The position numbers and the translations under genes are program-made. A model generated the notes under the pieces. The model searched no databases. It was not told where the DNA came from and saw nothing but the letters and a program-made list of their open reading frames with translations. Of a DNA stretch of 64,000 nt, positions 55,536 to 61,001 are shown one piece after another; positions within the stretch are counted from its first letter, which is position 1; each line of letters begins with the position of its first letter. The stretch lies in sequence record LC727699.1, one strand, 5' to 3'.

Positions 55536-57416
55536 ATGGCTGTTAACGAAAACGAAATCGGCACCGTTCAAACTCAAGCTACCGCTCCGGCTCCGCAACC
55601 CACTGCACAACGTCAAGCTCAACGTCCGGCTGGCGCACCTGGGTCCACTACTGGCATTAACCATCTAATGCGTCGCTCTGGTCGGCTAGATGGCTCTGAT
55701 GCTCGTTCAGCAGATGCCCTACAAGTATTCACTAAAGTAAAAGAAGAAGCAATCCGCCATCAGGACCTACCTGATGACTTCGATATCCATCGTTTCGATC
55801 GCGATGCACAACAAGTGGGTATGGCTGGTCTACTCATTGTTAAACTAGCTAAAGATATCAATGGTTCCATGAAGGCATTCGTTCGTACTCTAGTACTCGA
55901 TAACCTACCTGGTACTCGCATCCGTCCCCGTACCCACAAAATCAACAATGGTCTAACTGATGACATCATTGAAGAGAAGGTACTACCGCGTGATGTATTC
56001 ACTGCTCAATACTGGAGCAAGATCGGCGAGTTCCTACGGAACCGTTACAACATCCCTGGTCTAGAAGTACTATCTGCCGGTCCACGTGCAGTGTATGCTG
56101 ACTTCGACTTCAAAGATGAACTAGCTGTTAAGAACCTACTAGTTGAATCCGTTAATATCTGTGAAGATGCTATTGCGCGTCGTAACAATGAGACTCCGTT
56201 CTCTATTGCGACCCACATCAAAGCAGAAAACGAACAGCTTACCTGCAATCTAGACTACAATGGTATTCCGGTTAAAGATAGCTGTGGTAATCCGATCCGT
56301 TCTGACCTGGTCATCTCCACTAGCCGTGGTAAGAAAACCAACGTACCTGAGAACGAGTTCTATGATACCGATAGCCAGCTAAACCAAGTTAGTCTATTCG
56401 TAGATCTACATTGGACTCCGACCACTGGCCAGCAACAAGGTATGTTTGGCGTAACTCTACCTGGTGCAGTTCTACCTCCGCAGTTCACTCCTTACATCGT
56501 TATCACTGACGTTCGTAAGGCATCCTGGATCCAAGCATGGACTCTAGAAATGTGGCTGTTCGCACTTGGTAATGCGTATCGTGCAACTGCATCCCAGGCA
56601 TGGGCTCGTACTCTAATGCCGAAGATCGCTACTAGCAAGATGCGTGATATTGGTGCACTTGGTTATTACTCAGAGCTAGGTAAAGCGATTGAAACTCGCA
56701 CCGAAGCATTCATGGCAGACGATAGCAACTTCGTAATGCTAATGAACAAGATGGTTAACCAGAACCCTGCATTCCAGATCGATATCGATCCGATGGGTGA
56801 CAACTCTGCTCTTGAGCAGGTAGTCCTAGATGCAGCTGGTGGCGTAAACCAAGCTCGTGCAGTTAGTCTGATCTTCCAAGCTCTAACTAACCTATACGGC
56901 ACTGATTTCCGTCAGTTCTATAATCTAGCTGAAGCTGGTCCGATTATCTTTGACAACCATCATGAAGTAGACCTCGGTCACTACACTGATGAGCATGGTG
57001 AACTAAGCGACCGTCGTGATCTCGACGTTCTAGGTGCCATGAACATGTCTGAAGGTAATGACCAAGAGTGGAAGACCTGGTATGCTACTCAGGTAGGTAA
57101 TGACCACATTGTGCGTCGTATGAATAACAGTAAAGGCTTCGACAAGATGTACCTAGGTAACGTTACCTATACTGGTCGTGCTCGTCGTCTAACCTTTAAC
57201 CCGAAATTCATCACCGCAATGGATGCCGCAGCAGCAGCAGCTGGTGTAACTGTAACCATGGAAAACCTAATTACCAACTTCGGTCAACAGCGCTTCGCTG
57301 GTTACACCGGTATGGGTAACATGGCTGTTTCTGGTAGTGCACAAGTTGGTATGGCTGGCAGCATGGGTCAAACTTACGGCGCTCCTTCCTATAACGCACC
57401 GGGTACCTGGTACTAA
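55536..57416 (+). CDS. chmA: Chimallin, major phage-nucleus shell protein (phiKZ gp54)
   Basis: 626 aa; segments resembling 201phi2-1 gp105 as recalled ([62 protein letters not shown]); next to the nvRNAP subunit. Confidence 0.95.
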
Positions 57417-57767: not shown

Positions 57768-57809
57768 TTATATCTCCTTTTTTTGTTAATCGATAAATAG
57801 GAGTTTGGT

Positions 57810-58946
57810 ATGGGTCTTTATGCCAAAGTTGTTGATCATAATGAAGTTCATGATCAATTTACGGGTAAACGAATTTATGCCAATGATTACAATACGAGTA
57901 ACTCAGATGAGAAAGAAGAATTTGATAGGCATTTCTATTCTCATTTCCAAGATTCAGAAGCAATTGAAAGTAGTGTAAGCTGTGATTGTCGAGCAATCGA
58001 AGACGCACATAAACTCGGAGTAATCTGTGATATTTGTAATACTCCAGTTGTCAATACTTCTAGCCGTCCTATCGAACCATCAATGTGGGTTCGTACACCA
58101 AAACATGTACGTAGCCTAATTAACCCACGTTTAATCATTATGCTAACCGGATATCTAGTAACTAAAGAATTCGATTTCTTAGCATATCTAACTGATACTT
58201 CTTATCGATACGATGTAGAATCTATTGGTTCTAAAGAAACACGCAGGAAAGTAGATAGGCTACTGCATCGAGGATTTGAAAGAGGATTAAATCACTTCAT
58301 TGATAATTTCAATGAGATCTTCCAATTCCTACTAGATGCAAATATTATCTCTAATAATAAATCCGAATTCGCTCAATTCGTTGCTCAGAATAAAGATAAG
58401 TTATTCCCTAAATATTTACCAGTTCCTTCTAAACTCTGTTTCGTAGCAGAATCAACCACATCTGGTACTTACTTAGATAAACCAATTGAAGCAGCAATTG
58501 ATGCTACCTTAACCTTCGCTAGTATTGATGCATCATCTGTACCACTTAGTCCAATTAAAGCTCAGAATAGGACTATGCGAGGACTAAGACTATATGGCCA
58601 GTTCTACGAGATCTACGCAAAATCACGAATTGCTCAAAAGCCTGGTCTTGCTCGGCGTCACATGTTTGGTGCTCGTCTCAACGCTACGGCACGTGCAGTA
58701 ATCACTTCTATTAGTGACCCGCATGATTATGATGAACTACATATCCCTTGGGGGGTAGGTTGTCAATTATTAAAGTATCATCTAACCAATAAACTAAAAG
58801 CAAAGTTTAACATGACAACTCGTGAAGCATTCTCATTTGTATATGAGAATGTACTTCAATATAACCAAATCATTGCAGATCTATTTAAAGAGCTAATTGC
58901 AGAAGCAGCCCCTTATAAAGGGATGGGTTGTACTTTTCACCGAAAT
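57810..58946 (+). CDS. Non-virion RNA polymerase beta'-N subunit, exon 1 (phiKZ gp55-like)
   Basis: Zn-finger CDC...CDIC; RRHMFGARLNATARAVIT; ends CTFHRN immediately before intron 1. Confidence 0.9.
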
Positions 58947-59251
58947 TAATTTGTATATTAATACTAAATGGTTTCCTTGTAATAGAAATATTACTCGACA
59001 AAACTCCTTTAATTGCTGGGACATCTCAATGAGACAATCAGCAGCGAAGCTTTCCAGAAATGGATTGAACGTTCAACGACTATCGAAAGGCACGAAAGTG
59101 AACCGAGTAGAGTAGAGTCAAGTGACTCGAAATGGGGAGCACCTTACTGGGTAATGCCAAAGGTGAAGATATAGTCTGGTCTGCATGGTGACATGCAGCT
59201 GTCTGTTACTAATAGACGGGATAAGCTTAACGAACTTATCTGAACACAACG
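58947..59251 (+). mobile_element. Group I intron 1 (305 nt, no ORF)
   Basis: P AATTGCTGGGA 59011, Q AATCAGCAGC 59036, R GTTCAACGACTAT 59071, S AAGATATAGTCT 59166; P1 GAAAT/GTTTC with U.G at the splice site; terminal G. Confidence 0.9.
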
Positions 59252-59359
59252 CCAACCCTTCAACGTGGATCCACACAGCAGTTCTTTATTACCAAAGTAA
59301 AAGATGACATTAATGATAATTCTATCAGCATGTCAGTATTATGCTTGAAAGCGCCTAAT
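59252..59359 (+). CDS. nvRNAP beta'-N exon 2 (36 codons, PTLQRGS...LKAPN)
   Basis: Restores RNPTLQRGS (beta' NRxPTLHR-like motif) in frame; absent from the ORF track. Confidence 0.9.
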
Positions 59360-60731
59360 GGACAATTGAATAACTAAATAAGGGTAAAAACAATGGATCA
59401 AAACGGAGTAGTGTCCGTCTTTGATCCGGCTTCATTTAAAATTGAATGGCGGGATATTCCTGGATACTCAGCATATGAAGCTAGTAACCTAGGAACAATT
59501 CGTCATAAGCGGTTAAATAGAATATGTAATTTCTTCCTTACTAAAACATCGATTGGGACATATCTCAATATTGGTGCAAAAAATGATGAAAAAACATCTA
59601 AGAGTAAGGGAGTTCATATATTAATCTGTTTAGCTTTCCATGGTCCATCACCTGGACCAGATTATGAAGTCAATCATAAAGACGGCAACAAACATAATAA
59701 TCTACCATCTAATTTGGAGTGGATGACTCGTGGTGAAAACTTAGAACATGCTTACAAAAATGGATTAAGAAAAGAAAATAGACGAGTAATTGCAACTGAT
59801 GTTACCACTGGTGAAAAGACTACTTATTACTCGATGAGTGAACTTGCTCGGGCATTAGGAGTTAATAAAAATACGGTTTGGGTTATTATACGTGATCATA
59901 AGACTAAGCCGTATAGAAATAGATTCACATTTGAATTTATTACCGGTGAGACTAAGATTGCTGATCGAGATAGTACCAAGACGGTTTATGTTTTAGACTA
60001 TAAGACTAAGACATTGCATGTGTTTCATAACTTAGCAGAAATGGAACTTGCACTAGGTACTAAACGTAATAAAGCCTATTACCATCTAGTTAGAGGTAGT
60101 AAGGAAATCATGGATGGTTTGGTATTCTCATATACCGCTAATCCTGAAGATTTCCCTAAATATACTCAGAAAGAAATTGAAGCCTCATTTGGAAAACCTA
60201 GTAATGGAAAAGGTACTCCAATTGAAGTAACCGACACCATCTTGAACACTACCAAAGTGTATCCGAGTATTCCACACTTTGCAAGAGATGTCGGTATTAA
60301 GCATCCGAATACTGTTCGAAGAGCAATCTTTGAAAAGAATGGAGTGCTTGATAAATACCTTATTAAGTTAATCAAGTCTAGTTCCCCTAATGAGTAATCA
60401 TTGGGATGAGTTCTCTCTAATTGCTGGGATATCCTGTTAAACTAATCTACCACTGCGAGTCGAAAGACAAAGCCAAGGTTTGAAAAAGATTAGGTAGGGC
60501 CAATCAGCAGCCAAGCTCCGTAACATTCCATTTAGGAATAGGAGAAGGTTCAACGACTATTACGGTATCAGGTGCACCGGTCCTAGAAATAGGATGTAGA
60601 GTCAAGTGACTCGAAATGGGAGACACCCCACTCCGAAAGGAAGGGTGAAGATATAGTCTGGTCTTCTAGTGAAAGCTAGAGCTGCACGTAATGGTGCGGG
60701 TATCAATTAACGACTGATACTGAACAATACG
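59360..60731 (+). mobile_element. Group I intron 2 (1372 nt) carrying an HNH endonuclease ORF
   Basis: P 60419, Q 60502, R 60548, S 60648; terminal G at 60731; splicing restores NADFDGD. Confidence 0.9.
59393..60397 (+). CDS. Intron-encoded HNH homing endonuclease (NUMOD4-HNH with C-terminal HTH repeats, I-HmuI-like; phiKZ gp56-like)
   Basis: YEASNLGTIR; HILICLAF; VNHKDGNKHNN..SNLEW.T..EN; repeats YYSMSELARALGV and YPSIPHFARDVGI. Confidence 0.92.
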   Translation: MDQNGVVSVFDPASFKIEWRDIPGYSAYEASNLGTIRHKRLNRICNFFLTKTSIGTYLNIGAKNDEKTSKSKGVHILICLAFHGPSPGPDYEVNHKDGNKHNNLPSNLEWMTRGENLEHAYKNGLRKENRRVIATDVTTGEKTTYYSMSELARALGVNKNTVWVIIRDHKTKPYRNRFTFEFITGETKIADRDSTKTVYVLDYKTKTLHVFHNLAEMELALGTKRNKAYYHLVRGSKEIMDGLVFSYTANPEDFPKYTQKEIEASFGKPSNGKGTPIEVTDTILNTTKVYPSIPHFARDVGIKHPNTVRRAIFEKNGVLDKYLIKLIKSSSPNE

Positions 60732-60953
60732 GCTGATTTTGACGGCGATCAATTGAATCTTACGTTAATGCCTGATGTGTATCTAACTAAAGCAACTGAA
60801 CGCATTGCACCACACACGTGGGTTCTATCTATTGATGAACCACATGAAATCTCAGGTAACCTTGAATTACAGGGTCCTGTTGTAGAAACAATTATTAACT
60901 GGGCACATGAGAAGTATTTACCGCCATTAGAAGAATGGCTAAAAGCAAAATAA
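60732..60953 (+). CDS. nvRNAP beta'-N exon 3 (ADFDGDQLNLTLMPD...; phiKZ gp56.1-like)
   Basis: Catalytic DFDGD motif lies just upstream of the track ORF 60753..60953, in the same frame. Confidence 0.92.
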   Translation, partial: ADFDGDQLNLTLMPDVYLTKATERIAPHTWVLSIDEPHEISGNLELQGPVVETIINWAHEKYLPPLEEWLKAK

Positions 60954-61001
60954 ATTAATAGGGGAGTTAGACTCCCCTATTATTTCTTTGAGGCTGGTAG
61001 C

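Follow-up and report, generated by a model that had tools for sequence, protein, structure and literature searches.

A predicted P1 extension in the gp56 intron of a phiKZ-like phage pairs the nuclease ribosome-binding site with the last codons of the same reading frame

Placement of an open reading frame (ORF) in the P1 helix of a group I intron, overlap of the ORF with ribozyme core helices and masking of its ribosome-binding site (RBS) are all known already (PMC3073962). For the td intron of phage T4 and its endonuclease I-TevI, unmasking of the RBS caused a splicing defect, according to the review PMC3073962 in its account of Gibb and Edgell (2010). Here we describe a related arrangement in a 64,000-nucleotide stretch of sequence record LC727699.1 (the window), which belongs to a phiKZ-like Pseudomonas phage; for this region the match is 100% to Pseudomonas phage sp. 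LC and 97% to phiKZ. The element is the second of two group I introns in the homologue of phiKZ gp55, which encodes the N-terminal beta' part of the non-virion RNA polymerase (nvRNAP), and its P1 loop (L1) holds an HNH homing-endonuclease ORF, the homologue of phiKZ gp56. The gp55/56 intron and its nuclease had been predicted as early as 2002, as cited in PMC11512511. We found that P1 is prolonged by a predicted long-range clamp, in which the Shine-Dalgarno sequence (SD) of the nuclease pairs with the nuclease's own last codons (Table 1).

With T4 td/I-TevI this intron shares a phage group I ribozyme carrying an endonuclease ORF in a peripheral loop, an RBS sequestered in RNA structure (by prediction here) and an ORF whose 3' end supplies nucleotides to splicing helices. 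Ribosomes on those helices impair splicing in T4, and by analogy the same conflict may arise here. The layouts differ. The T4 ORF lies in P6a and its RBS in a local hairpin; in the present intron L1 houses the ORF, and it is the P1 extension that would sequester the RBS, by means of the ORF's 3' end 965 nt away. T4 lifts the repression by late-promoter transcripts, and nothing comparable is known here; moreover, transcription and translation are coupled in T4 and uncoupled in phiKZ-type phages. An ORF in P1, as here, is found in the Synechocystis tRNA-fMet intron (I-Ssp6803I) and in the Physarum I-PpoI intron (Table 1 of PMC3073962). The I-Ssp6803I ORF overlaps P1/P2 by 61 nt, compared with 40 nt over the clamp, guide sequence and P2 in the gp56 intron; these two nucleases belong to the PD-(D/E)XK and His-Cys box families rather than to the HNH/NUMOD type, and the host genes differ too. 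We found no report of P1 masking the RBS in the I-Ssp6803I or I-PpoI introns, and a limited search of the open literature returned no description of an RBS masked by a P1 extension through the last codons of its own ORF. The sister introns in phiKZ-type RNA polymerase genes share the ribozyme type, the L1 ORF and the P1-extension clamp, and differ in having the SD outside the paired clamp. A more distant likeness is the Min Jou interaction of the RNA phage MS2, where pairing to a remote coding segment closes an RBS until translation through one strand opens it; MS2 is the genomic RNA of an unrelated virus and has no ribozyme, and its masked gene and masking sequence lie in different genes. The arrangement described here is a variation on regulation known from phage T4 introns and no new kind of system.

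The splice junctions were read from RNA contigs of four libraries from four studies, all with phiKZ-specific letters; such contigs give neither RNA levels nor transcript starts. Contigs of three libraries join 59359 directly to 60732, and in the fourth the same junction is seen as a loose end, showing that the splice site proposed in an earlier note on this DNA was correct. The intron, again with phiKZ-specific letters, was present in the same runs as the spliced joint, and intron contigs started at 59360 and stopped at 60731. Both ends follow the group I rules, with the exon-final U59359 pairing with guide G60381 and the intron ending in G60731. These contigs contradict an ONT-cappable-seq preprint that reported no splicing evidence for gp56 (10.1101/2023.10.13.562163). 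A further joint in the phiKZ-derived contigs, 58946 to 59252, reflects the absence of intron 1 from phiKZ DNA.

Two details of the same contigs concern the fate of the intron. In runs X5 and X14 one unaligned extra letter precedes 59360 at the start of the intron contig; it may be the guanosine added during splicing. In run X14 one contig passes from the last intron G, 60731, into 60364, and another begins at 60364 with four extra letters. The joint of 60731 to 60364, seen in this run only, looks like a truncated intron circle made by attack inside the 3' strand of the clamp. Such a circle would free the ORF part minus its last 11 codons.

The 7-bp P1 core (59357-63 with 60376-83, including U59359.G60381) joins the splice site to a guide sequence 1 kb away. 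Its 3' strand ends 2 nt before the P2 hairpin (60386-60405), and the guide sequences of intron 1 and of the intron in gp71/73 occupy the same position relative to P2. We compared 17 Phikzvirus alleles and found that one core pair, 59363:60376, covaries, being C-G in 12, U.G in two, U-A in one and C.A in two. Four alleles carry an extra C after the splice site, opposite A60380, and only the register with U59359.G60381 keeps the subsequent GGA/UCU pairs in them; the insertion therefore fixes this register. The energy model alone favours U59359-A60380 over U59359.G60381. Thus the junction seen in RNA, the position of the guide strand before P2, the covarying pair and the C insertion bear out the earlier claim that the long helix contains the true P1, and the coordinates place the entire HNH ORF in the loop. 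We take the P1 core to be real, with the ORF in L1.

P2 shows three one-sided changes among the alleles, pairing is kept in all of them, and the hairpin was found in the minimum free energy (MFE) folds. We rejected a different guide, the P2 3' strand AUUGGG pairing with exon CCUAAU, which gives U-A at the splice site in this window; the pair-preserving changes and the position of the hairpin also support P2. In this phage only, owing to T60388, the P2 5' strand CCUAAUG (60386-60393) copies the exon-intron junction CCUAAU/G (59354-59360), which would allow the P2 3' strand an alternative pairing with the 5' exon; the other alleles have CCCAAUG or CCCAGUG.

Beyond the core, the earlier note had described a helix of about 22 bp between 59357-59383 and 60358-60383, with a U.G pair at the splice site and two mismatches, and we recovered both complementary stretches exactly there. 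RNAduplex paired 59359-59383 with 60358-60380 through 21 pairs at -19.9 kcal/mol. In the U.G register, which is that of the note, A60380 is bulged, U59359 pairs with G60381, and A59357 and A59358 pair with U60383 and U60382, giving 23 pairs. The defects are two A.A mismatches (59370/60371 and 59376/60365) and an unpaired AA at 59364-65, and the clamp proper, 59366-83 with 60358-75, stacks on the P1 core. Dinucleotide shuffles gave -8.7 +/- 2.3, and the observed energy was reached by 1 of 2000 when the 5' strand was shuffled and by 3 of 2000 when the 3' strand was. The best partner of the 5' strand among the 3,200 windows of 57800-61000 was 60358-60383. Furthermore, none of 4000 synonymous-codon resamplings of the 11 codons of the 3' strand reached the observed energy, and the complementarity is therefore no by-product of the protein sequence.

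The structural evidence for the clamp consists of thermodynamic prediction and a shallow comparison. Partition-function folding of the full 1,491-nt RNA gave all 21 duplex pairs probabilities of 0.72-1.0. The earlier note had placed the SD inside the helix, and this held: within AAGG(G) at 59380-59384, the bases 59380-83 were predicted unpaired at 0.03-0.05, i.e. 95-97% paired, with the AUG open, and in silico pair probabilities for 59377-83 were 0.84-0.99. The apical 7 bp of the clamp join the SD region AAUAAGG to CCUUAUU in nuclease codons 322-324. This apical part is also predicted in phiKZ, PA7 and NK1, and the helix appears in the MFE folds of 7 of 7 ORF-deleted alleles tested and is predicted in 4 of 5 long ones; the SL2 allele has a fold with z = -5.47, unmatched by any of 200 shuffles. 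Alleles without G59384 lengthen the SD helix by two pairs (UA/UA). A local hairpin starting from the G of the nuclease AUG, 59395-99 with 59423-27, was seen in the MFE fold and is kept in all ORF-deleted alleles; it may be a further brake on initiation.

We consider that these features are best explained, with about an even chance that the explanation is right as a whole, by a helix that forms in the gp56 intron, masks the SD and is opened by ribosomes. RNA folded for splicing would conceal the RBS of the nuclease. The segment 60358-60383 comprises codons 322-331 of the 334-codon ORF, and the last 13 codons (322-334) with the stop codon cover the clamp 3' strand, the guide sequence and the 5' strand and loop of P2; since these codons cross all three elements, a ribosome finishing the ORF would have to melt P1 and P2. 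With the SD hidden in folded RNA, and P1 and P2 melted by such a ribosome, splicing and nuclease translation would exclude each other on any one molecule.

This retains one part of the regulatory reading put forward in the earlier note, namely that ribosomes on the ORF would unwind the guide sequence; by its coordinates the ORF takes the finishing ribosome across this sequence and P2. A coupling of nuclease dose to polymerase maturation, also suggested there, is conjectural. A competition between ribosomes and P1 during transcription, as pictured in the note, fared less well. In chimalliviruses transcription takes place first in the early infection vesicle and later in the phage nucleus, neither of which contains ribosomes (PMC12908238). 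Consequently clamp formation and splicing can precede any ribosome, and co-transcriptional competition is unlikely. In a coupled system the SD would be free for about 25 seconds, an interval without bearing here, as the RNA can fold and splice before export. The default state would be a spliced polymerase mRNA and a silent nuclease, whose sole templates are probably those few RNAs, a minority, that arrive in the cytoplasm unspliced. On such RNAs a ribosome coming from exon 2 would go 5 codons into the intron and stop at UAA 59375-77, opening the clamp 15 nt before the AUG. Every one of the 17 alleles has an exon-frame UAA in the 5' strand, reached 4-8 codons inside the intron and 5-19 nt short of the AUG. 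By translational coupling the exon 2 ribosome could then hand over to the nuclease start on the unspliced RNA. A stronger version, which we hold only tentatively and think unlikely, makes the P1 clamp a compartment-aware switch: splicing would proceed with a silent nuclease in the vesicle and nucleus, escaped unspliced RNA would be unlocked by the exon 2 ribosome, and nuclease output would report splicing failure.

Sister introns show which of these features are general. Intron 1 of fMGyn-Pae01, ANB1 and GUMS (loci L005 401-1750, L007 and L012) carries in L1 a paralogous HNH ORF of 273-277 amino acids with about 35% identity to gp56. It exists in two diverged versions, one in fMGyn-Pae01 and ANB1 and the other in GUMS, and each has its own long-range closing helix. 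The gp71/73 intron of phiKZ carries the gp72 ORF, likewise in L1, and this ORF reads across the guide sequence and all of P2 before its stop. In these three other L1-ORF intron forms we found long-range clamps joined to P1, of about 9-19 bp and -36.4, -29.7 and -29.8 kcal/mol, with the SD outside the paired part, in a loop or beyond; the gp56 intron is the only one of the four ORF-bearing forms examined with the SD inside. From this distribution, and from predicted structures, the clamp is a general solution for spanning an L1 insertion, and SD masking is particular to the gp56 intron. For the gp71/73 intron (L019 950-2180, L017) the 5' splice site is best placed after GGU, giving H-G-G-K-G together with U.G pairing to AUUGCC, which lies 2 nt before P2; a site after AAU was dropped, as the position after GGU fits the HG-x-KG motif and the U.G pair.

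The 17 alleles also gave a check, proposed in the earlier note, for covariation along the helix. It returned the one core pair, uncompensated changes in mid-helix and an invariant SD part. The 3' strand is constant except at 60376. The 5' strand is unusually variable: of the 17 alleles just 8 keep 59366 and 59368 paired and 11 keep 59375 paired, and duplex energies range from -12.4 to -20.0 kcal/mol. AAUAAGG and CCUUAUU are constant in all 17, and UAAC/GUUA is constant except in PaZh_1, where a 4-nt deletion removed UAAC. The 26 nt past the P1 core, 59364-59389, are the most variable part of the intron 5' end, with substitutions, a slip of a CTAA unit and single-base indels, and TAA triplets before the ATG are kept in all three frames. 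Retention of both strands in the ORF-deleted alleles was dropped as independent evidence; those deletions end at a short direct repeat and are probably repeat-driven. When the phage collection was searched by tblastn for the HNH protein, every full-length relative had at least 92.8% identity, the next hits being the paralogous intron 1 ORF at about 35%; no orthologue lay between 35% and 92%, and an exact-pattern scan of IMG/VR for the intron core gave no match.

Several of these observations weigh against SD masking with ribosome-driven opening. The constancy of the 3' strand is uninformative, because just as little variation, no more than one variable site across the nine long alleles, is seen in 53% of the 26-nt windows of the ORF. 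The mid-helix changes at 59366-68 and 59375 are one-sided and lose pairs, and two alleles with intact ORFs, NK1 and KEN51, are among the weakest at about -12.5 kcal/mol; both facts argue against a tuned 22-bp switch. Because the SD and its partner are invariant, the comparison neither supports nor refutes their pairing, and SD function together with coding could be enough for their conservation. The next best, unrelated AT-rich site pairs with the 5' strand at -16.9 kcal/mol, the helix is weaker in KEN49 (p about 0.25), and equilibrium predictions of pairs over a 1-kb range are unreliable in vivo. The position of the SD outside the clamp in all three sister forms counts on the same side. Helix formation and a limit on translation are plausible from predicted RNA structure, and the coupling step is inferred from geometry.

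What the sister introns and the drifting mid-helix would also fit is a purely structural clamp that bridges the 1-kb insertion, with the SD inside by positional accident and translation not meaningfully controlled. Clamps occur in all four ORF-bearing forms, three of them with the SD outside, and the SD part shows no covariation. We nevertheless rate this alternative as somewhat unlikely: no segment of the clamp is more stable or less variable than the SD part, alleles without G59384 extend it, an SD paired at p of about 0.95 should reduce initiation whatever its origin, and ORFs in phage introns commonly have a masked RBS (PMC3073962). The energies of unrelated sites, of the weakest alleles (just -12.4 kcal/mol) and the unreliability of long-range prediction would also fit a case in which pairing in vivo stops at the short P1 core, the extension being a by-product of AT-richness or insertion history that local structures and proteins outcompete. 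This is improbable in our view, given how rarely shuffles (1 of 2000) and synonymous resamplings (0 of 4000) reach the observed energy, the recurrence of the helix in short and long alleles, and the continuity of the extension with a core that the observed splicing needs.

A different kind of explanation would make the clamp irrelevant to nuclease dose, with the protein coming mainly from another RNA, either an excised intron after clamp opening or cutting or a transcript starting within the intron. Contig ends at 59360 and 60731 suggest that the excised intron persists, and the joint of 60731 to 60364 would part the ORF from the core. An excised intron retains both clamp strands, though, and its SD would still be masked, and a cut at 60363/60364 loses the last 11 codons and the stop codon; the contigs, moreover, cannot show transcript starts, and the circle-like joint came from one run. 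We regard this source as very improbable. Masking of the SD by the P1 extension, with opening by ribosomes, thus remains our preferred explanation at the strength given above.

The nuclease ORF combines HNH and NUMOD modules (Pfam HNH_3, 4e-14; NUMOD1, 2.8e-29 in three stretches; NUMOD4, 2.4e-05). Its product is 99.1% identical to PHIKZ056 and about 30% identical to I-BasI and to genes annotated as I-HmuI. The HNH protein of Erwinia phage RAY (27.7% identity) was rejected as a comparison, being free-standing beside a ribonucleotide reductase gene and outside any intron. Among the 17 alleles the ORF is intact in seven, has early stops in two (KEN49 and ANB1) and is deleted in eight. Read from the sequences, these losses and early stops are the usual decay cycle of a homing endonuclease. 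In the eight deleted alleles (L002-L004, L012-L016) about 890 nt of the ORF are gone between two short A-rich repeats ending in GAATGG, at 59437-59450 and 60330-60342, with two junction types that leave remnants of 37 and 21 amino acids.

The gp55 homologue starts at 57810 as the next gene after that for chimallin and is interrupted twice. Both interruptions match the group I intron family RF00028 of Rfam, at 88.9 bits for intron 1 and 79.1 bits for intron 2, whose catalytic core (P3-P9) passes the gathering score of 50 at 60360-60681.

Table 1. Features of the gp55/56 locus in the window (a slash in a motif marks the 5' splice site)
Feature	Position	Strand	Evidence
Chimallin gene	55536-57416		Pfam 1119.6 bits
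Exon 1, nvRNAP beta'-N (phiKZ gp55 homologue)	57810-58946	+	ORF list; contig joint 58946 to 59252; annotation PHIKZ055
Intron 1, group I, no ORF, sister of intron 2	58947-59251	+	RF00028, 88.9 bits; same stretch absent from phiKZ
Exon 2, 108 nt, ends in CCUAAU; U59359 is the splice-site U	59252-59359	+	RNA contig joints; frame resumes in NADFDGD motif after 60732
Intron 2, group I, HNH ORF in P1 loop	59360-60731	+	RF00028; contig joint 59359 to 60732
P1 core 5' strand AAU/GGAC, across 5' splice site	59357-59363	+	Partner 60376-60383
P1 extension (clamp) 5' strand, with exon-frame stop UAA 59375-77 and most of the SD	59366-59383	+	Predicted pairing
SD AAGG(G) of HNH ORF, 8 nt before ATG 59393	59380-59384	+	Sequence; predicted paired, p about 0.95
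HNH homing-endonuclease ORF, 334 amino acids (phiKZ gp56 homologue)	59393-60397	+	Pfam; PHIKZ056 identity
P1 extension 3' strand, in ORF codons 322-328; 60358-60364 CCUUAUU is the predicted cis anti-SD	60358-60375	+	Duplex, fold, codon resampling
Internal guide sequence GUCU-A-GUU; G60381 pairs with U59359, A60380 bulged	60376-60383	+	2 nt before P2; allele C insertions
P2 hairpin, 8 bp, GUAA loop; ORF stop UAA 60395-97 in loop	60386-60405	+	Sequence; alleles; MFE folds
Ribozyme core P3 to P9, terminal G60731	60406-60731	+	Rfam alignment; contig ends at 60731
Exon 3, opens A-D-F-D-G-D, catalytic motif restored by splicing	60732-60953	+	ORFs; contig joint

Exact splice junctions are now available for the phiKZ gp55/56 intron, in which a long-read study had reported no splicing evidence. 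If the clamp masks the SD, a single helix would define the splice site, span a 1-kb insertion and silence a potentially harmful nuclease. Should the compartment-dependent version hold, the last codons of the gene would provide a cis anti-SD that also belongs to a ribozyme helix. As in eukaryotes, transcription is kept physically apart from translation in these phages, which is an unusual setting for such an intron, and phiKZ-type introns would then offer a tractable model for how the spread of a mobile intron is set against an essential host gene, here that of the phage RNA polymerase.

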